Assembly: GCA_002794465.1 (NCBI GenBank)
Contig: MTSL01000065.1
Coordinates: 1-9,387, forward strand
DNA from: Paramicrosporidium saccamoebae KSL3
Taxonomy: Eukaryota > Fungi > Cryptomycota
Direction: 5' to 3'
DNA length: 9,387 nt
The translations under genes were made by a program, and so were the position numbers. Below, in pieces: positions 228 to 9,387 of this stretch. The notes under the pieces are model-generated. The model made no database searches. It was not told the origin of the DNA and worked only from the letters and a program-made list of their open reading frames with translations. The stretch's first letter is position 1, and the number at the start of each line of letters is the position of its first letter.

Positions 228-329
228 CCATTTTCAGTGACAGATTTGCGAAAATCTAGGCATAAGCGGAAACACCGTAGCCCATGTGACCAAGCACTTT
301 AAAACTCCGAAAACCAGGGTTATAGAGCA
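228..329 (+). repeat. Type-B upstream module (copy 1, K1); homologous to 3365-3469 upstream of K3
   Basis: Identical 12-mer agcggaaacacc at 265-276 and 3403-3414, with collinear agattt, agccc, caagcac and agggt blocks. Confidence 0.8.
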
Positions 330-1415
330 ATGTTCGTGGAGGTGATAATCCATCTACTCACCCTAGCAGCGCTAGGTGCTACCTCGCGGACCGCGCACCC
401 TCTATCCAAGCTAACCCTCCCTGAACTGCTGCAACGAAAGAATGAAGGGCTTACAAATCGCGCGGGCTGCTATCTACCGCTCTTCCCAAAATACAATGGA
501 AAGCTATGCACCCGCAATGACTTTAAATTTGTCAAGTCAATCAGTAGGAGTAATTGCGACAAGATCATCACCGCCGTCTACCTTGCGGAACACTGTGCCT
601 CAGGCAAAACAGTAGTTATCAAAAGTATGTACAACGTTCCCCCGGATGAGATCCGGATAGACGAGATAGCCCTTAATATGCTCGGGCACCAAAATATCCC
701 AAAAGGTATTTGCACCTTTGCTGAGGGACAAATAGTAAATCTGGTTATGGAATTTGACACTGAAAAGACCCTCGAGAAGTGGATAGGCGCTCCAGAGGCC
801 GCCCAGCCCGGCTTCTTTCAAAACGTGACTCGCCAGTTGGTGGATGTTCTGGCTTATCTGCACGACCTACACATAATTCACAGTGACATCAAGCCCTCCA
901 ATATTTTGGTAGCCAATGACGGAATGGTCAAACTGATTGACTACGGTATGGCCATTGTCAGCGGCCCCGATGGCACCACAGCCCGATGCGGCGCTCCGTT
1001 ATACTATTCCCCAGAAAAATTAGACAAATCTACCGGATGCTACAATAACGGAGCCGATTGGTATGCGCTCGCGGTGACACTGATTGAAGTTAAGATGAAA
1101 GTGCACCCATTCGACCACATCAAGGCTAGAAAGGATCTGAAAAAGGCTATCAAAACGGAGATTATTGTAAACACGGGCGATTCCGACTTTGATAGTTTTT
1201 TTCAAAATCTTGTCCGTGTGAATCCCGAGGAGCGTTGGAGTCATGCGAACAGGGATATGGACAAGATTCTAAATCATCCATTTCTCGCAAATATACACGT
1301 TTCAACAGAGCCAAATATCCAGGCTGAGCCTGTTGATACAATGACAAAGCCCACAACAACTAAAGAAGATTTGGTTTCAAGTGATGCAGGGGCAAGTCTC
1401 AGTGACTTCTCATAA
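330..1415 (+). CDS. K1: signal-peptide-bearing Ser/Thr protein kinase (AGC-like, non-RD), 361 aa, soluble tail
   Basis: Motifs VVIK (K98), HSDIKPSN, DYG, RCGAPLYYSPE, ADWYALAV, PEERW and KILNHPFL. The N-terminus MFVEVIIHLLTLAALGATS is hydrophobic and signal-like. The tail ends ASLSDFS. Confidence 0.93.
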   Translation: MFVEVIIHLLTLAALGATSRTAHPLSKLTLPELLQRKNEGLTNRAGCYLPLFPKYNGKLCTRNDFKFVKSISRSNCDKIITAVYLAEHCASGKTVVIKSMYNVPPDEIRIDEIALNMLGHQNIPKGICTFAEGQIVNLVMEFDTEKTLEKWIGAPEAAQPGFFQNVTRQLVDVLAYLHDLHIIHSDIKPSNILVANDGMVKLIDYGMAIVSGPDGTTARCGAPLYYSPEKLDKSTGCYNNGADWYALAVTLIEVKMKVHPFDHIKARKDLKKAIKTEIIVNTGDSDFDSFFQNLVRVNPEERWSHANRDMDKILNHPFLANIHVSTEPNIQAEPVDTMTKPTTTKEDLVSSDAGASLSDFS

Positions 1416-1424
1416 CAACCTTTC

Positions 1425-1681
1425 ATTAAAAATCCATCATTTCCAAAGTTTGAGTGGCAGGTGTAGTTGGCATGGTGCTGCCCTATGGCAGAACTACAAT
1501 CTTTTACAATCCAGTCTCAAAAGTTGGAAACTCGGTGCTTATCAGACTACATTGAGACTCGTACTCTAGGTATAAATAATGCCATCCTCTGGTACAGGAC
1601 TTTACATTTATAAAATTTACCCCCGTGCCAATATGCTTCTGGGCACTTGAAATTGAACTCATATAACCAGGGAGCATTGCA
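1425..1681 (+). repeat. Type-A intergenic module (copy before K2)
   Basis: Shares ccatcattt, ctacaatctttta (1494-1506), cgtgcca and ctcatataaccaggg with the other copies. Confidence 0.8.
1658..1681 (+). promoter_or_regulatory. Conserved pre-ATG motif CTCATATAACC(A)GGG-N9-ATG (copies at 1658, 4737, 6678, 8491; variants at 312 and before 3470)
   Basis: ctcatataaccaggg (K2, K4), cccatacaaccaggg (K5), ctcatataaccgggg (K6), aaccaggg (K1), actaggg (K3). All six ATGs have G at -3. The function is inferred only. Confidence 0.5.
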
Positions 1682-2659
1682 ATGTTCGTTGGGATAATAT
1701 TCCGTTTGCTCGCTCTAGTGGCGCTAGGCGCTGCCTCGCGGATCACACTCGCCCCAAACAAGCAGTCCTACCATGAACTGGTGAAGCGAGCGACTAGAAA
1801 GCTCTCGGATTGCCAAGGCGATTATAGGCCGCTCTTTCCAAACTATATGGGCAGAGAGTGTGCCCGCGATGACTTCAAATTTGGCAAGATACTTGGTCAA
1901 AAGCAAGGCGTTTATAGTTCCACCAAGATCTACCTTGCGGACCATGATGCTTCGAAAAAGAAGGTAGTCATCAAAACTATGTGTGGCATTGACTTGGGTG
2001 TGATGAGGATGGACGAGATTGCTCTCCATATGCTCGAGCATCCAAATATTCCAAGGGGCATTTGTACATGTTTTGGGGGAGACAAGAACACGGTGCATCT
2101 GGTTATGGAATTTGACACGGAAAAAACTCTTGAGAATTGGATGGATACTCCCGAGGCTGCCAACCCTCGCTTTCTTCGAAAGGTCGCCAGCCAGTTGGTG
2201 GATGTGCTGGTCTACCTGCACGACCGGAACATTATTCACAATGACATCAAGCCCCCTAATATCCTGGTACTCGATGACGGGACGATCAAACTGATCGACT
2301 ACGGCTCGGCCACTGTCAGCGCGCTTGATGGCACCACAAGCGGGGACGGCACCCCAGTATATAACTCACCAGAAAAGTTAGACACACCTAGCTGTTACAA
2401 TAATGGAGCAGACTGGTATGCATTGGCAGTAACACTTATTGAATTTAAAACTGGGAAGCACCCGTTTGGCCATATCCAAACAATGGCTGATCTGAATGAA
2501 GCTGTCAAAAAAGGAATAGTTGTAGATACGAGAGATTCCGATTTCAACAACTTTGTCAAAATGATTGGCCATGTGGATCCCAATCAGCGTTGGAGTCATG
2601 CTAATGGAAATATGGACAAGATTCGAAATCATCCATTTCTCAAGAATTCAGGGGTTTAG
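1682..2659 (+). CDS. K2: signal-peptide-bearing Ser/Thr protein kinase, 325 aa; C-terminal tail truncated by an apparent 1-nt deletion
   Basis: Motifs VVIK, HNDIKPPN, DYG, GTPVYNSPE, ADWYALAV and KIRNHPFL. The ORF stops 5 codons after HPFL, while a paralogue-like tail continues in another frame to 2760. Confidence 0.92.
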   Translation: MFVGIIFRLLALVALGAASRITLAPNKQSYHELVKRATRKLSDCQGDYRPLFPNYMGRECARDDFKFGKILGQKQGVYSSTKIYLADHDASKKKVVIKTMCGIDLGVMRMDEIALHMLEHPNIPRGICTCFGGDKNTVHLVMEFDTEKTLENWMDTPEAANPRFLRKVASQLVDVLVYLHDRNIIHNDIKPPNILVLDDGTIKLIDYGSATVSALDGTTSGDGTPVYNSPEKLDTPSCYNNGADWYALAVTLIEFKTGKHPFGHIQTMADLNEAVKKGIVVDTRDSDFNNFVKMIGHVDPNQRWSHANGNMDKIRNHPFLKNSGV

Positions 2660-2760
2660 CAGAGACAGGCTGTGCTGCTTATATTGTGACAAAACCCGTA
2701 GCAATACAAGCATCCCCCATTTCGGACGGTGCAGGGACCAGTCTTGACGACTTTCAGTAA
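2653..2760 (+). pseudogene. Out-of-frame C-terminal tail of K2 (GLAETGCAAYIVTKPVAIQASPISDGAGTSLDDFQ*)
   Basis: Manual translation from 2653 is open to TAA at 2758-2760. It matches the K1 tail (TKP plus 20 aa, SSDAGASLSDFS) and the K3 end (SLDDFQ*, shared agtcttgacgactttcagtaa). Confidence 0.8.
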
Positions 2761-2845
2761 AAATCTATCATTTGTTGAGCAGTTTCGAGTTTTGACTAGT
2801 GGCTGCGGTCGGCCTTTTGCTGTTTATGACAGATTTACAGTCTAG
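2761..2845 (+). repeat. Type-A intergenic module, 5' part only (after the K2 tail)
   Basis: atcatttgttg...tttcgagttttgactagtggctgc matches 4505-4550 and 6290-6307. Similarity fades near 2845. Confidence 0.75.
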
Positions 2846-3364
2846 CTTTAGATGATAAAAATCAAAACTCATGAACCCGTAGCTACATGCATTAAAGACG
2901 GCCTGCCCGGGGACTCGACGTCAGCGACAGGATGGTAAATTTTTATCCTGTAAACCCGCTATATTGTTGCTGACAAAGTTTTAAATTGGTCGACTATATC
3001 AGGATTTATGGCGTCAACCCTACGACACTAACGTCCTCGAGCGTAGATCCGAATTTGACTGAAAGAACGATTCATTTGTTTCAGGTGGCACAGAATATGG
3101 TAATTAGTGCGCTATTCCAACCCCCCCCTCACTGAGGACAATGACTCGTGTGCTTTCTGGATGCTAAAACAAGAAACATCTTGCTGATCCTCGAAAATAA
3201 AGCCAACACTGAACCCAGGATCGTAATCGCCCGATACGGATATATTACAAGCCATTGCTGCCACCCCCCCCCAGTGGTGGTAATGATGATGCATGTCACT
3301 TTGTGGACATGTTATGACATTTGGATCCCATACAGAGATAGGGCCGCGCCGACGAAGAATCCCA

Positions 3365-3469
3365 CCAGTCTCTAGTAAAAGATTTACAAAAATTCAGAGA
3401 TGAGCGGAAACACCACAGCCCTTGCAATCAAGCACCTTAACCGGGACTAAATGACTAGGGTGCGTAGCC
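3365..3469 (+). repeat. Type-B upstream module (copy 2, K3)
   Basis: Collinear similarity to 228-329. Confidence 0.8.
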
Positions 3470-4504
3470 ATGTTCGTGGGAGTGATATTTCATCTGCTCG
3501 CTCTTGTGGCACTAGGTGCTACCGCGCAGCCTCCAGTCGAGCTGTCCCACTCCAAGCTACTGCAGAAAGCGAATAGAAAACTCTCGACCACTTGGGGTTA
3601 TTACAAACCTCTTTTGTCAACCTATAAGGGCGGAGAGTGTACTCTTTTGGACTTTGAATTTGGCGAGGTACTCAATTATAAGAAAGGCGGTGGTAGTTAC
3701 ACCAAGGTCCAACTTGCAGAGCATGTGGCTACAGGAAAGACTGTAGTCATCAAAATTATGAAGAACATTGGCTTGCGTGCAGTTAGGATGGACGATCTCG
3801 CCCTTAACATGCTCGAACATCCAAATATTCCAAAGGGTATTTGTACCTTTATGAATATGAAGGAGGTGAATTTGGTCATGGAATTTGATACTAAGAGGAC
3901 CCTTGAGAAATGGATAGGTGCTCCAGAGGCCGCCGATCGCCGCTTCCTTCAAAATGTGACTCGCCAATTGGTAAATGTGCTGGCCTACTTGCACGACAAT
4001 CACATCACCCACAATGACATTAAGCCCCCCAATATTCTGGTATCCGATGAAGGAACAGTTAAACTAATTGACTACGGCCTGGCCACTGTCAGTGCGCTCG
4101 ATGGTACCACGATCGAAAATGGCGCTCCAGCATACAGTTCACCAGAGAAATTGGAAAAATCTAAGCGTTACAATAATGGAGCAGACTGGTATGCACTCGC
4201 AATAACCCTGATTGAATTTAAAAAGGGGAGGCACCCGTTTTGTAGTGTCGCAACAGTATATGAGCTGAAAGAATTTACCAAATCCTGGGTACCCGAAGAT
4301 ACGGACGATCCCGAGTTTGATAGCTTTGTCCGAGGGATTGGGCATTTCGATCCCGATCAGCGTTGGAGCCATGCGAATGGAAATATGGACAAGATTCGAA
4401 ATCATCCATTCCTTACAGAGGCTGGAACGGTACCAGATCTCTGTACAAGAGGAGAGATCCCCGTTTCAAGTAGCACAGTAGCAAGTCTTGACGACTTTCA
4501 GTAA
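3470..4504 (+). CDS. K3: signal-peptide-bearing Ser/Thr protein kinase, 344 aa, soluble tail
   Basis: Motifs VVIK, HNDIKPPN, DYG, GAPAYSSPE, ADWYALAI and KIRNHPFL. This is the only copy with a Gly-rich loop remnant (KKGGGSY). It ends ASLDDFQ. Confidence 0.93.
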   Translation: MFVGVIFHLLALVALGATAQPPVELSHSKLLQKANRKLSTTWGYYKPLLSTYKGGECTLLDFEFGEVLNYKKGGGSYTKVQLAEHVATGKTVVIKIMKNIGLRAVRMDDLALNMLEHPNIPKGICTFMNMKEVNLVMEFDTKRTLEKWIGAPEAADRRFLQNVTRQLVNVLAYLHDNHITHNDIKPPNILVSDEGTVKLIDYGLATVSALDGTTIENGAPAYSSPEKLEKSKRYNNGADWYALAITLIEFKKGRHPFCSVATVYELKEFTKSWVPEDTDDPEFDSFVRGIGHFDPDQRWSHANGNMDKIRNHPFLTEAGTVPDLCTRGEIPVSSSTVASLDDFQ

Positions 4505-4760
4505 AACTCCATCATTTGTTGAAGTTTTGAGGTTTGACTAGTGGCTGCAGTTGGCACGACGTCGCCTTATGACTGATTTATAGTCTTTTACGATCCAGTC
4601 CCAGAGGATAAAAGCTCAGTGCTGATAAGACTGCATTGAGCCTTCTCCTCTCATCGGCATAGGAAATGTCATCCCGGTACATGTCTTGCAGAGCTCATCC
4701 TCGTGCCACTATACGTCTAGACACTTTAAGTTAAAACTCATATAACCAGGGGACACTGTA
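4505..4760 (+). repeat. Type-A intergenic module (copy before K4)
   Basis: ccatcatttgttg, tttgactagtgg, catcctcgtgcca and ctcatataaccaggg are collinear with 1425-1681 and 8311-8513. Confidence 0.8.
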
Positions 4761-5915
4761 ATGTTCGTTGGGATAATACTCCGCTTGCTCAATCTAGCAG
4801 CACTAGGTGCTGCCTCGCAGGCCACACTTGCGCCAACCAAGCCGCCCTACTCCGAAATACTACAACGAGCGACTAAAAAGCTCTCGAATTTTTGGGGTAA
4901 TTACGAACTGCTCTATCCAAACCATGTGGGCAGAGAATGTAGTCACCATGATTTTAAAGTTATCAAGTCACTCAGTCATAAGGCAGCCGCCAATAGTTTT
5001 ACCAGTGTCCACCTTGCAGAACACAAAATTTCAGGAAAGAAGGTAATCATCAAAACTTTGCATAGAATTGCCTTGAGCGCAATTAGGATGGACGAGATTG
5101 CCCTTTACATGCTCGAACATTCAAATATTCCGAATGGTATTTGCACATATTTTGGGGAAAGCAAAGATACGGTGAATTTGGTCATGGAATTCGACACTGA
5201 GAGGACTCTCGAGAAGTGGAAAGGTACTCCAGAGGCCGCCGATCCTCGCTTTCTTCGAAAGGTTGCCAGACAGTTGGTGAATGTTCTGGCCTACCTACAC
5301 GACCGGCACATCATTCACAATGACATCAAGCCCTCCAATATCCTGGTACTCGATGACGGAACGATTAAACTGATTGACTACGGCTCGGCCACTGTCAGTG
5401 CGCTTGATGGCACCACGAGAGGAGAGGGCACTCCACTGTACAATTCACTAGAGAAATTCAAAAGAGACGCGCTTTACGATAATGGAGCGGACTGGTATGC
5501 ATTGGCAGTAACACTTATTGAATTTAAAACTGGGGAGCACCCGTTTGGCCATATCAAAAACTTTTATATACTGGAAGTAGCTGTCCAAAGAGAGATAGTT
5601 GTGAACACAGATGATCCCGTGTTCAATGACTTTATTCAAAATCTCTCCCGTGTGAATCCCAAAGAGCGTTGGAGCCATGCTAATGGAGATATGGACAAGA
5701 TCCGCAACCATCCTTTTCTCACAGAGACTGAAACGGTATCGGATCTCTGGGCAAAAGGAAAGGCTCTCATTTCAAGTAACACAGTAGCGAATCTTGACAG
5801 CGGTGGCGTGCAATGGACAGACGTAAGCAAGGGCGCTTATTGGTCCATAGCACTGCTTGTGATCTATCTATTGTGGCTCGTGATGGGCCCATCTGCTATG
5901 GTCCAGGGACTATAG
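4761..5915 (+). CDS. K4: signal-peptide-bearing Ser/Thr protein kinase with C-terminal hydrophobic anchor (TM or GPI signal), 384 aa
   Basis: Motifs VIIK, HNDIKPSN, DYG, GTPLYNSLE (SPE changed to SLE) and ADWYALAV. The terminal hydrophobic segment WSIALLVIYLLWLVM lies at 5841-5885. Confidence 0.92.
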   Translation: MFVGIILRLLNLAALGAASQATLAPTKPPYSEILQRATKKLSNFWGNYELLYPNHVGRECSHHDFKVIKSLSHKAAANSFTSVHLAEHKISGKKVIIKTLHRIALSAIRMDEIALYMLEHSNIPNGICTYFGESKDTVNLVMEFDTERTLEKWKGTPEAADPRFLRKVARQLVNVLAYLHDRHIIHNDIKPSNILVLDDGTIKLIDYGSATVSALDGTTRGEGTPLYNSLEKFKRDALYDNGADWYALAVTLIEFKTGEHPFGHIKNFYILEVAVQREIVVNTDDPVFNDFIQNLSRVNPKERWSHANGDMDKIRNHPFLTETETVSDLWAKGKALISSNTVANLDSGGVQWTDVSKGAYWSIALLVIYLLWLVMGPSAMVQGL

Positions 5916-6443
5916 CCCTTATATGGTGCCATGGTCAGGTAGAAAAGTCCGTCCTATACAACACAGCCTGTAGTCACTAGGGCCAGCCCTCGCTTGGCGC
6001 ATGCATCCAATAAGATGTTTATGTATGCAGTGTGGTGGCACTTTGATAAAGTGGATTGATTTGTTGGGTATTTGATGATTATCACCATGTCACTTGAGAG
6101 ACTATAAAAGGCCTATTGGATTAAAAGTGAATGGGTTCTCTTCCCGCTTGAGAAATCCTGTGGTATTACCTCCACTGCACGGCATATCGGTGGCAAAGCC
6201 CATTGTTAGATCCTGTGCTATGGATCGACCAGTGGCTCACAACGACTTTCAACAAGTGTTTACCATAGAACGTATTCTTTGCTGATCGATTTCGAGTTTT
6301 GACTAGTAGCTATAGTCGGTATGATGCTACCTTATGGCAAATCTACAATCTTTTAAAGACCTCTTGCAGATACAGGAAATACCATCCCAGTACGGGACTT
6401 AGAGTTCATCCTCGTACCACTATATTTATAGGCACTTTAGATT
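5916..6443 (+). repeat. Long downstream block of K4 (including a type-A module from about 6266), homologous to 7844-8490
   Basis: Collinear blocks: tatgtatg.agtgtggtgg.actttgat, actataaa, a 59-nt near-identical block (6209-6267), tttcgagttttga.tagt, ctacaatctttta, agatacaggaaa and gagttcatcctcgt. Confidence 0.85.
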
Positions 6444-6668
6444 GTCGCGTAGTGGGGATAAATAGTATGGACTGTCAGGCGAGAAGAGACGAGATGGGAC
6501 GAGAAGGGAATTTCTTCAGTCGATCCAACGACCCATTTATAGGCTCACAAATAACATAATCCTCAAATGGTAAAGGTCTCATTATCCTTCATAGATTGTT
6601 CTGATTATCCCTTCTCCAAACTAGGGAACCATTTCCTAAAGACATGCTAATCAGTCTTTTACGTCACA
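6444..6668. other. Approximately 225-nt insertion interrupting the type-A module upstream of K5
   Basis: The module matches the other copies up to ggcactttagatt (6443) and resumes at agattacaacccatacaaccagggg (6669). A direct repeat agatt lies at 6439-6443 and 6669-6673. Confidence 0.6.
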
Positions 6669-6701
6669 AGATTACAACCCATACAACCAGGGGTTACTGT
6701 A

Positions 6702-7843
6702 ATGTTCGTTGGGATAATACTCCGCTTACTCAATCTAGCGGCGCTAGGTGCTGCTTCGCAGGCCACACTTGCGCCAACCAAGCCATCATACTCTGAATTA
6801 CTGCAACGAGTGACTGAAGACCCCTCGACTTTCTGGGGTCGTTATAAACCACTCTATCCAAAATATAGGGACAGAGAATGTAGTCGCCATGATTTTGAAT
6901 TTATCGAGTTACTCAGTTATAAGGAAGATCCCGATAGTTTTACCCCAGTATCCACCTTGCAGAACACAAGACTTCAAAAAAGAAGGTAGTCGTCAAAACG
7001 ATGTATAGAACTGCCTCGAGTGCAATTAGGATGAACGAGATTGCCCTTCATATGCTCGAACATCCAAATATTCCAAAGGGTATTTGCACATATTTTGAGG
7101 AAAGCACAGGTACAGTAAATTTGGTTATGGAATTTGACACCAAGAAGACTCTCGAGAAGTGGATAGGTACTCCAGAGGGCGCTAACCCTCACTTTCTTCA
7201 AAATATGGCTCGCCAATTGGTAGAGGTGCTGGCCTACCTGCACGACCATCGCATCATTCACAATGACATCAAGCCCTCCAATATTCTGGTATCCGATGAC
7301 GGAAGTGTCAAACTGATTAGCTACGGCTTGGCCACTATCAGTGCGCCCGATGGCACCACGAAAGGGACAGGCACTTCAATATACAACTCGCCAGAGAAAT
7401 TCACCAAACTTTACAATAATGGAGCAGACTGGTATGCACTCGCAGTAACACTGGTTCAATTTAAAACTGGGAAGCACCCGTTTAGCCATGTTAAGAAGCC
7501 TTGGTCACTGAGGAAGGCTCTCCAAAACGGAATAGCTGTGAACACGGATGATCCCGCGTTCAATGACTTTATTCGAAAGCTTTCCCGTGTGGATCCCAAA
7601 GAGCGTTGGAGTCATGCTAATGGAGATATGAGCCTGATTCGAAATCATCCATTTATCACAGGAACTGGCACGATACCAGATTCCTGGGCAAGGAAAAAGG
7701 TCCTCATTTCGGATAGCGCAATAGTAAGTCGTGAAAGCAGTGGTGTACAATGGATAGATCCGAAAAAGCGTGGTTATTGTTTAATAGCACTGCTTGTCCT
7801 CTATCTGTTGTGGCTCGTGATGGGCCAATCTGCTACGATCTAG
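6702..7843 (+). pseudogene. K5: frameshifted kinase paralogue (about 379 aa if restored), probable pseudokinase, with C-terminal hydrophobic anchor
   Basis: It joins ORFs 6702-6989 and 7001-7843. Compared with K4 (ttt acc agt gtc cac ctt gca), K5 reads ttt acc cc agt atc cac ctt gca, i.e. 2 extra C in the run at 6943-6946. The DYG Asp is Ser (agc, 7319-7321). The hydrophobic tail CLIALLVLYLLWLVM lies at 7778-7822. Confidence 0.85.
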
Positions 7844-8513
7844 GAACAATAGCCATTATGTGTAACCATAATCGGGTAGGGGAATCTGTCCTACAAAACG
7901 TTCTGGAATCAATAAAATCGGCCTTTGTTTGGTGTGTCCAGCAAGACATGTATGTATGTAGTGTGGTGGTACTTTGATGGAGCGGATTGATTGCCATATT
8001 ATTTGGGGTTAGTGCTCAGTTTGGAGAAGACATATTTGGAACAATCGATTAAAGACAGTGATATCTTTATCACTTTAATATTACTACTACGTCTCTTGTG
8101 GAACTATAAATAGGCTTACACATTGATAATAAAGGAGTTCTTTTGCCTCCCGAATAAGTAGTAGTGATAAATCATGTGGTATCCCCCGCTGCATGGCGAC
8201 GGGACACTTGTATGCAGCGATCAATTATCGGTAGCAAAGCTCGTTTTTAGATGATCCTGTGCTATGGATCGACCAGTCGCTCACAACGACTTTCAACAAG
8301 CGTTTACCATAAAACTCATTATTTACTGGTCGTTTCGAGTTTTGATTAGTGTCTGGGGCCGGTATGGTGCCGCCTCATGGTAACTCTACAATCTTTTAGA
8401 GACCTCTCACAGATACAGGAAACACCACCCCGAAATGGGACTTGGAGTTCATCCTCGTGCCATTATGTTTCTGGGCGCTTTAAATTAAAGCTCATATAAC
8501 CGGGGATACTGCA
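7844..8513 (+). repeat. Long downstream block of K5, ending in the type-A module before K6
   Basis: Collinear with 5916-6443 and continues directly into ctcatataaccgggg-N8-ATG. Confidence 0.85.
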
Positions 8514-9387
8514 ATGTTCGTTGGGATAATACTCCGCTTGCTCAATCTAGTAGCACTATGCGCTACCTCGCGGATCGCACATTCTTCATCCGAGTTAACC
8601 TACTCTGAATTATTGCGACGGAAGAATGAAAAACTCTTGGATTCTAGGGACCAGTATAACTCGCTCTTTCCAACACATGACGGCAAACTATGCACTCCCC
8701 TTGACTTTAAATATGGCAAGAGAATTAGCGACAATTCAAATTCCTTTTCTTCCACTGAAGTTTTCCTTGCAAAACACAGTGCTTCAGATAAGTCAGTAGT
8801 CATCAAACGTACGTACGAGGTTGCTTTTGCTTCGATCCGGATGGAAGAGATAGTCCTCCATGTACTCAAGCACCCAAACATTCCGGATGGCATCTGCACT
8901 ATTCCCGAGGCAGGAGGCGTGGTGAATTTGGTTATGAACTTTGATACTGAAAAGACTCTCGAGAATTGGATGAAGACGCCAGAGGCCATCACCCCTTACT
9001 TTCTTAAAAATGTGGCACGCCAGTTGGTGGATGTTCTGATCTATCTGCACGACCATCACATCATCCACAATGACATCAAGCCTTCCAATATTTTGGTAAC
9101 TGATGATGGAAGAGTCAAACTGATTGACTACGACTTGGCCACTATCAGCGCGCGTGATGGCACCACCACCAACGGGGCAGGCACTCCACTGTACAGTTCA
9201 CCAGAGAAATTGGACAAATCTAAGCGTTACAATAATGGAGCAGACTGGTATGCCCTCGCAATAACACTACTTGAAGTTAAAAACGGGAAGCACCCGTTTG
9301 ACCATATCAGGGACAAATTTGAATTGCAAAAATTCACCAAATCCTGGGTACCCGAAGATACGGACGATCCCGAGTTTGATAGCTTTG
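8514..9387 (+). CDS. K6: signal-peptide-bearing Ser/Thr protein kinase, 3'-partial (291 codons visible)
   Basis: Manual translation from the ATG at 8514 is open to the window end: MFVGIILRLLNLVALCATS...LCTPLDF...VVIK...GICT...HNDIKPSN...DYD...GTPLYSSPE...ADWYALAI...FDSF. It is not in the ORF track, presumably because no stop is reached. Confidence 0.92.
   Translation, partial: MFVGIILRLLNLVALCATSRIAHSSSELTYSELLRRKNEKLLDSRDQYNSLFPTHDGKLCTPLDFKYGKRISDNSNSFSSTEVFLAKHSASDKSVVIKRTYEVAFASIRMEEIVLHVLKHPNIPDGICTIPEAGGVVNLVMNFDTEKTLENWMKTPEAITPYFLKNVARQLVDVLIYLHDHHIIHNDIKPSNILVTDDGRVKLIDYDLATISARDGTTTNGAGTPLYSSPEKLDKSKRYNNGADWYALAITLLEVKNGKHPFDHIRDKFELQKFTKSWVPEDTDDPEFDSF

Follow-up and report, generated by a model that had tools for sequence, protein, structure and literature searches.

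The DNA considered here is a stretch of 9,387 nucleotides (hereafter, the window) that forms positions 1 to 9,387 of contig MTSL01000065.1 in the genome assembly of Paramicrosporidium saccamoebae KSL3 (GCA_002794465.1), and it carries on its + strand six collinear kinase open reading frames (ORFs), c1 to c6, with pairwise identities of 55–70%. All six copies match the Pfam Pkinase family (PF00069, subdomains I–XI) above the gathering score, with E-values from 4.8e-33 to 5.9e-40, and they are considered intronless because their ORFs are continuous and gap-free in alignment to homologues. Their state of preservation differs: c1, c3 and c4 are fully intact, a frameshift removes the tail of c2, the N-lobe of c5 is broken, and c6 is cut by the window end. 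An initial annotation of this DNA had described six collinear intronless paralogues, each with a hydrophobic signal-like N-terminus, and the ORFs, the Pfam matches and the hydropathy profiles agree with that description. The window is probably part of a tandem array of lineage-specific exported kinases that go back to an AGC (PKA-like) catalytic subunit, in a rozellid intracellular parasite of the Paramicrosporidium type.

Every copy opens with MFV[GE][IV]I..LL.L[AV]ALGA[AT]S, the sole 15-residue stretch that reaches a mean Kyte-Doolittle hydropathy of at least 1.8 in these proteins, with the exception of a C-terminal stretch in c4 and c5. The signal-like part is followed by a pre-kinase segment of about 40 residues (G.Y.P.FP...C..DF, with invariant Tyr, Cys and Phe), and then by a kinase core whose motifs occur in the order V[VI]IK (beta-3 Lys), R[MI][DE][ED] (alpha-C), ICT (beta-4), H[NS]DIKP[SP]N and DYG, with the further core motifs DGTT..G[TA]P.Y.SPE, NGADWYALA and RWSHANG..D.I.NHPFL. 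The motifs from which the kinases had initially been recognized (ADWYALA, RCGAP/GTPxYxSPE, a DF before beta-1, KIRNHPFL and HNDIKPxN) can all be found in the alignment.

The beta-3 Lys, the HxD Asp and the catalytic Asn are kept in all six copies of the alignment, the DFG Asp in five of them (Ser in c5), and the alpha-C Glu likewise in five (Asp in c3). The catalytic loop is non-RD throughout (HND or HSD), and DYG replaces DFG. In the alignment, GxGxxG is absent from the six window copies and from their closest metagenome relatives, its position being taken by a hypervariable Ser/Lys-rich stretch that is three residues longer; deeper members of the family retain the motif. The non-RD, Gly-loop-less character first attributed to these kinases hence holds for all copies. 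Within the window subfamily, the most variable regions (c3 numbering) are residues 69–76 at the Gly-loop position, 98–102 in the beta-3/alpha-C loop and 260–271 in the alpha-F/alpha-G region, and the most conserved blocks are the beta-3 Lys, the catalytic loop, DYG and subdomain IX. Window copies retain a Thr at the position of PKA Thr197 (DGTT). KPEN, found in most other family members, is replaced by KPSN or KPPN in all of them; in PKA, the Glu of this motif reads the P-2 Arg of the substrate, and its loss suggests a changed substrate preference in the window subfamily.

Two types of C-terminus can be distinguished, namely an acidic tail ending in SL[DS]DF[QS] (c1, c3 and the displaced tail of c2), and a hydrophobic end that follows SGG or SSG and a 10-residue spacer (c4 and c5), and that may be a membrane anchor or a glycosylphosphatidylinositol (GPI)-attachment signal. 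A terminal SL[DSEM]DF[QS] was also observed in proteins P0002, P0003, P0005, P0057 and P0089, and persists among subfamilies with about 30% identity in the rest of their sequence. The SLxDF ending may have survived from the AGC hydrophobic motif (PKA terminates in F-x-x-F), or else it may serve as a sorting signal. The AlphaFold2 model of c3, with the family alignment as input, shows a bilobal kinase fold (mean predicted local distance difference test score, pLDDT, of 88; predicted template modelling score, pTM, of 0.84), in which order is good in the pre-kinase segment and poor in the N-terminal helix and the final 14 residues. A fold search with this model returned matches at template modelling (TM) scores of 0.6–0.87.

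From which group of kinases does this family derive? A family-wide profile run against solved structures retrieved AGC kinases as all of its top 60 matches, with 199–211 bits for PKA (yeast, mammalian), 193 for Akt1 and 189 for PKC-theta. With a profile of the window subfamily, PKA also came first and made up about 47 of the top 60 matches, but at 114 versus 110 bits, i.e., 4 above CDKL3. A deep paralogue with GxGxFG, YRD and DFG matches PKC-theta, PKG and PKA, and aligns to PKC-theta through HQWFQGIPWEDFERGHINVLIPPPKRP, which is the start of the AGC tail; deep paralogues keep this start (HxxF..I.W..L....I.PP..P) and carry YRD or FRD. The AGC (PKA-like) ancestry of the family, initially proposed from motif parallels, appears well supported by these matches, and extends to the window copies because they are nested within the AGC-derived family tree. 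These copies share with PKA and other AGC kinases the DF before beta-1, the GTPxYxxPE segment with a Thr at the Thr197 position, DWW/YALG, and HPFF/L at the domain end. They differ from them by their signal-like N-terminus, Cys-bearing pre-kinase segment and tandem expansion, by the lack of GxGxxG, by HND for HRD, DYG for DFG and KP[S/P]N for KPEN, and by an AGC tail and hydrophobic motif that are undetected. Window proteins end 9–45 residues past HPFL, and Pkinase_C (the AGC tail) gave no match in window copies or relatives. Judged by alignment, the window copies have since lost the AGC tail, the RD Arg, the DFG Phe, the Gly-loop and the KPEN Glu. The initial annotation had also contrasted them with AGC kinases in general, described as normally cytosolic and single-copy-like; the latter term is loose. 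The outgroup of the family tree, P0067 (XP_024214704.1, annotated as a Halyomorpha halys RSK), was split at residue 400, and its halves proved to be near-identical domains on a very long branch; since these are not the AGC-plus-CAMK pair expected, the tree yields no AGC-versus-CAMK conclusion, and P0067 may be a wrongly annotated gene model or a fusion of tandem genes.

Rozellids form an early branch of the microsporidian lineage. An exhaustive profile search, covering 1.84 billion representatives, retrieved about 20 single-domain relatives of 280–360 amino acids (aa), and every full-length one has a hydrophobic N-terminus and a Y-x-P...C...F motif. Relatives are rare, and come from a Joint Genome Institute (JGI) metagenome set, some Logan and JGI contigs, the assembly GCA_020047435.1 and P. 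saccamoebae; the single-domain proteins within the 150 best matches of the exhaustive search include none from Microsporidia, Mitosporidium or Rozella. Neither the other protein collection searched (5.8 billion) nor the gene-position index contains the window's own proteins, and an exact look-up of c4 gave the same outcome. Across these collections, the distribution of matches shows a family restricted to the Paramicrosporidium lineage. The closest relatives, P0001–P0005, are 48–55% identical to the window copies and were found, in tandem, only in JGI metagenomes 3300042203, 3300042204 and 3300042205; a sixth protein of these samples, P0006, has 40% identity to the window copies and belongs to another subfamily.

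In a 26-sequence alignment of the family (window, P. saccamoebae and other contigs), Y45, C57 and F62 are invariant, and C125 and R298 near-invariant. The family signature comprises the hydrophobic N-terminus, G.Y.P.[FY]P...C...F, [IL]CT in beta-4 and RW..[AS]N[GN]....I..H[PQ]F at the end. The hydrophobic N-terminus is retained among members that are only 25–35% identical, and the signal-like N-termini postulated at the outset are conserved family-wide, as judged from hydropathy and alignment. Tandem arrangement is equally recurrent: the number of tandem copies is 6 in the window, 3 at locus L001, 2 at L227, 6 at L231, 2–3 at L233, 2 at L234, 3 at L235 and 2 at L236.

One of these loci, L235, belongs to P. 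saccamoebae (MTSL01000121.1, 9995–13499), where three intact family ORFs lie in tandem on the same strand. Its copies resemble those of the window by their signal-like N-terminus, Y-x-P...C...F motif, ICT in beta-4, RW..ANG...I..H end and tandem arrangement, and they group with the window clade in the tree (support 99/98), but they share only 32–36% identity with the window copies and form a separate subfamily. One of them, PSACC_01713 (PJF18472.1, 'hypothetical protein'), is a family member with degenerate catalytic motifs (HNN for HxD, GFE for DFG), and its two neighbours keep LGxGxxS-type loops, unlike the window copies. PSACC_01713 is the only annotated gene of this locus, as a product of 277 aa with a called intron, though a continuous 313-aa ORF exists, and the ORFs at 11161–12231 and 12468–13499 are missing from the gene table. 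Two of the three copies at this published P. saccamoebae locus are thus unannotated, which exposes a gap in the annotation.

In GCA_020047435.1, six family kinases are clustered between RPL4/CPL and glutathione synthetase. The best named match of the RPL4 of this assembly is that of P. saccamoebae (76%), with 64–73% for Rozella and other fungi. Glutathione synthetase adjoins family clusters at L231, L234, L236 and L238, with CPL/PUF and RPL4 nearby at L231, L236 and L238. The glutathione synthetase neighbourhood recurs in three genomes; the number of copies in the glutathione synthetase-linked clusters varies from 2 to 6. In addition, the JGI organism has a 67%-identical orthologue of one P. 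saccamoebae copy.

All six window copies group as a single clade (100/99) in the maximum-likelihood tree; its sister is a clade of seven sequences of the JGI organism (96/94), and the two together are sister to a group with two P. saccamoebae copies. Expansion or homogenization therefore occurred separately in each lineage, without one-to-one orthology. One-to-one orthologues in free-living relatives, which would have spoken for an already described family, were not recovered among these sequences: the relatives lie in a lineage of intracellular parasites, and the tree is that of a lineage-specific expansion. Among window copies, pairwise synonymous divergence (dS) ranges from 0.27 to 1.0, and the ratio of nonsynonymous to synonymous divergence (dN/dS) from 0.32 to 0.65, remaining below 1 in every pair; these are therefore old duplicates, fast-evolving, under relaxed but real constraint.

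The array itself keeps traces of how it grew. Comparison of the window with itself (self-blastn) aligns the c1–c2 pair (576–2642) with the c3–c4 pair (3707–5721) at 72% identity, c4 and its 3' flank (4731–6061) with c5 and its flank (6672–7992) at 80% identity, and two copies of an intergenic repeat with each other (Table 1). DNA similarity that spans gene boundaries indicates growth by duplication of multi-gene units, either two genes or a gene plus its flank. The distal upstream sequences, which are of two alternating types (GAGCGGAAACACC in c1 and c3, CATCCTCGTGCCA in c2, c4 and c6), support duplication of such units. Closer to the genes, an alignment of upstream regions reveals a block, GCACTTTAAA...CTCATATAACCAGGG, located 8–11 nt upstream of every ATG from c1 to c6. 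It also precedes the metagenome relatives at L001 and L227, and was not found in other subfamilies; it may be a subfamily-specific core promoter or 5' untranslated region (UTR) element, in which case the 5' UTR would be very short.

Table 1. Coordinates of the kinase genes, gene pieces, repeats and upstream blocks of the window.
Feature	Position	Strand	Description
c1	330..1415	+	361 aa, intact; HSD catalytic loop, DYG; acidic tail ending SLSDFS; Pkinase E 3.8e-38
c2	1682..2659	+	325 aa, kinase domain intact; stop 9 codons past HPFL; Pkinase E 4.8e-36
c2 displaced tail	2650..2760	+	Other frame encodes ...GAGTSLDDFQ, stop 2758–2760 (three-frame translation); tblastn relic match 2716–2757
c3	3470..4504	+	344 aa, intact; Asp at alpha-C Glu position; tail ending SLDDFQ; Pkinase E 5.9e-40
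c4	4761..5915	+	384 aa, intact; additional C-terminal hydrophobic segment; Pkinase E 4.8e-33
c4 C-terminal hydrophobic stretch	5835..5903	+	Residues 359–381, after SGG and a 10-residue spacer (hydropathy scan)
c5 upstream piece	6702..6989	+	Signal-like N-terminus and pre-kinase region; frame lost 6946–6950, stop 6987–6989
c5 downstream piece	6950..7843	+	Remaining kinase domain in other frame; SYG for DYG; hydrophobic C-terminus 7769–7834; Pkinase E 1.3e-33
c6	8514..9387	+	291 codons, cut by window end; DYD for DYG
Intergenic repeat, copy 1	6185..6443	+	About 260 bp, 82% identity to 8226–8486 (self-blastn)
Intergenic repeat, copy 2	8226..8486	+	82% identity to 6185–6443 (self-blastn)
Upstream block c1	294..319	+	GCACTTTAAA ... 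AACCAGGG, 10 nt before ATG (alignment)
Upstream block c2	1637..1673 (approximate)	+	Contains CTCATATAACCAGGG (alignment)
Upstream block c3	3425..3461 (approximate)	+	Degenerate copy (alignment)
Upstream block c4	4716..4752 (approximate)	+	Alignment
Upstream block c5	6657..6693 (approximate)	+	Partly degenerate (alignment)
Upstream block c6	8469..8505 (approximate)	+	Alignment

Two copies of the array are damaged. The stop of c2, at 2657–2659, lies directly after a G-run, and the displacement of its tail may be due to a recent frameshift or, alternatively, to faulty assembly. For c5, both pieces were searched separately, the stop never being read through. This copy is probably a pseudogene, as it is the only one with two independent defects, the N-lobe frameshift and the loss of the metal-binding Asp (ISYG motif); the block upstream of c5 is partly degenerate too.

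In apicomplexan parasites, exported kinases that have expanded into families are central to virulence. Among them, the ROPK are signal-peptide-bearing, often intronless, tandemly duplicated and fast-evolving kinases or pseudokinases of intracellular parasites (cited in PMC5423893). The window family follows the same strategy, but it is AGC-derived and belongs to another, fungus-related parasite lineage, without rhoptries; nothing had initially marked the copies as ROP kinases, and no ROP kinase occurs among the top 60 sequence and top 50 fold matches. The FIKK kinases of Plasmodium are exported, lineage-expanded and active, and have no canonical Gly-rich loop. The window family is likewise a lineage expansion, putatively exported and devoid of this loop, but it is AGC-derived and has VVIK; the FIKK motif is indeed absent, beta-3 reading V[VI][IV]K, and no PEXEL-type motif was seen in window proteins. 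Fam20C, VLK and Four-jointed are, as proposed for the window proteins, signal-peptide kinases of the secretory pathway or extracellular space, but of an atypical fold family, in contrast to the canonical eukaryotic protein kinase fold found here. The Toxoplasma kinase WNG1 is secreted via the parasite's secretory pathway, lacks the Gly-loop, keeps its catalytic residues and is experimentally active (PMC6442604), and secreted Gly-loop-less kinases can therefore work. Unlike the window family, WNG (with-no-Gly-loop) kinases are conserved rather than tandem, have vacuolar parasite proteins as substrates and form a ROPK-related apicomplexan clade, and they show no specific similarity to the window family. 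Closer in terms of lineage, Reinke et al. (2017, PMC5423893) report for two species of Microsporidia that protein kinases have expanded among the large gene families predicted to be host-exposed, which are enriched in signal peptides or transmembrane segments; these belong to a related parasite lineage, and would resemble the window family in function. Literature searches returned no description of the window kinase family, and the P. saccamoebae genome paper is silent on secreted kinases. Judged by its sequence, the window family is an independently evolved family of putatively exported kinases, outside the apicomplexan families by descent.

How could such kinases operate? Each gene would be driven by its own short conserved promoter-proximal block, and its product would enter the parasite secretory pathway via an N-terminal signal peptide, which is presumably cleaved. 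The invariant Cys57 (before beta-1) and the near-invariant Cys125 (beta-4) probably form a disulfide that stabilizes the fold, as their conservation suggests. Proteins with an acidic SLxDF tail (c1, c3) would then be released, and those with a C-terminal anchor or GPI signal (c4, c5) held at the parasite surface. P. saccamoebae lives as a parasite within the nuclei of Saccamoeba and has a genome of 7.3 Mb with 47% GC (PMC5701793), and a kinase exported by a parasite living in this way, inside a host cell or nucleus, would meet host ATP and proteins. It would phosphorylate Ser/Thr without activation-loop control, since a kinase with a non-RD loop is expected to be active even when its activation loop is unphosphorylated, and with an altered nucleotide lid and P-2 specificity residue (KPEN to KP[S/P]N). 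We infer catalytic activity, export to the host and the existence of host substrates from these features. The initial interpretation, namely that of an independently evolved family of secreted, AGC-derived kinases that may act on host proteins, is supported at the level of sequence, and the family is a credible candidate host-directed effector family. A bolder scenario, which we regard as possible but tentative, would have a PKA subunit captured by the secretory pathway, freed of the constraints imposed by the regulatory subunit, the activation loop and the Gly-loop, and amplified into soluble and surface-anchored kinases that are released into the host nucleus and rewrite host phospho-signalling.

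Several observations weigh against this interpretation or parts of it, and other explanations have to be considered. The AGC tail is missing from the window subfamily, and PAK, MEK, PKA, PDK1 and Aurora score alike in the fold search, which leaves AGC unseparated from STE/Aurora; the mean dN/dS is below 1, and positive selection is not demonstrated. The kinases could also be retained in the secretory pathway or at the surface of the parasite, with its own exported proteins (spore wall, polar tube, surface coat) as substrates, in the manner of Fam20C in the Golgi or WNG1 in the Toxoplasma vacuole. Signal-like N-termini and conserved cysteines fit the secretory pathway, c4 and c5 have a putative C-terminal anchor, the genomic neighbourhood is conserved in several genomes, and WNG1, the nearest functional analogue among Gly-loop-less kinases, phosphorylates parasite proteins (PMC6442604). 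We nevertheless consider such a role unlikely, as the number of copies varies between lineages (2, 3, 6, at least 6) through separate expansions, the dN/dS values of 0.32–0.65 are high for housekeeping kinases, and the putative substrate-facing segments are the most variable ones.

The replacement of the Gly-rich loop by a longer hypervariable Ser/Lys-rich stretch, the alpha-C Asp of c3, the DYD of c6 and the SYG of c5 cast doubt on the activity of some copies, and, together with the HNN and GFE of PSACC_01713, they would fit a subfamily of pseudokinases, exported as non-catalytic scaffolds that bind host or parasite partners in the manner of ROP5. Yet the beta-3 Lys, the HxD Asp, the catalytic Asn and the DYG Asp are retained together in five of the six copies, in the most conserved blocks, and loss of the canonical Gly-loop does not abolish activity in FIKK kinases. 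The same applies to WNG kinases (PMC6442604), and a purely scaffolding role appears improbable, more so than action on the parasite's own proteins. The moderate confidence of the N-terminal helix in the c3 model could indicate an uncleaved membrane anchor, or even a mis-called start, the proteins then being ordinary intracellular membrane-associated AGC kinases. This is very unlikely, however: the hydrophobic N-terminus begins at the first ATG, 8–11 nt past the conserved upstream block, in all six copies, it is kept at 25–35% family identity, the small residues LGA-A/T-S follow it as for a cleavage site, and the conserved cysteines fit an oxidizing compartment. Finally, the frameshift and metal-binding Asp loss of c5 and the tail loss of c2 might betray a decaying relic, whose duplicates are becoming pseudogenes without present function, but four ORFs of 325–384 aa remain intact despite a dS of up to 1.0, dN/dS is below 1 in all pairs and the promoter-proximal block is conserved even across species, so that we attach hardly any weight to this explanation.

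The interpretation in terms of exported, host-directed kinases would have several consequences. To our knowledge, effectors of the rozellid/microsporidian lineage are almost unknown, genetics is lacking, and no comparable kinase family has been characterized in it. If release into the host nucleus occurs, the window family would give Rozellomycota their first known effector family, and Gly-loop-less secreted kinases would have arisen independently of the apicomplexan ROPK, WNG and FIKK. Being 320–380 aa long and intronless, with a confident predicted fold, these proteins are candidates that should be easily expressed. They would also offer a natural experiment in which a PKA-like core loses stepwise the Gly-loop, the RD arginine, the DFG phenylalanine and the AGC tail, with intermediates in sister subfamilies.

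Other origins and wider scans were also considered. A bacterial origin of the window was rejected, as sigma-70 and terminator patterns occur at the level of shuffled sequence, no tRNA or Rfam match was obtained, and relatives adjoin eukaryotic genes such as RPL4 and CPSF73. A viral origin was rejected as well: a degenerate DNA pattern for NGADW[YF]A gave 24 matches in IMG/VR, none of which was a true relative by tblastn. In a prokaryote-only contig collection, the same NGADW[YF]A pattern yielded, among the matches listed, chance matches and one generic kinase. A metagenome scan based on the family alignment retrieved generic kinases, at 37% identity or less, and was swamped by them because HNDIKPxNI, one of its two patterns, is generic. 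A word-indexed protein search with the broad alignment was overrun in the same way and did not retrieve known members.

Searches for tRNA and Rfam families detected no RNA genes in the window. Its small intergenic and antisense ORFs have no Pfam and no family match, and were treated as non-genes. Long ORFs of the - strand recur at the same relative position in the copies (600–863, 1724–2239, 3617–4012, 6974–7261 and 8793–9068), and are regarded as non-genes because none of them matches Pfam and all reflect the conserved coding frame on the opposite strand. The guanine plus cytosine (GC) content is 42–49% throughout the window, and about 45% overall.

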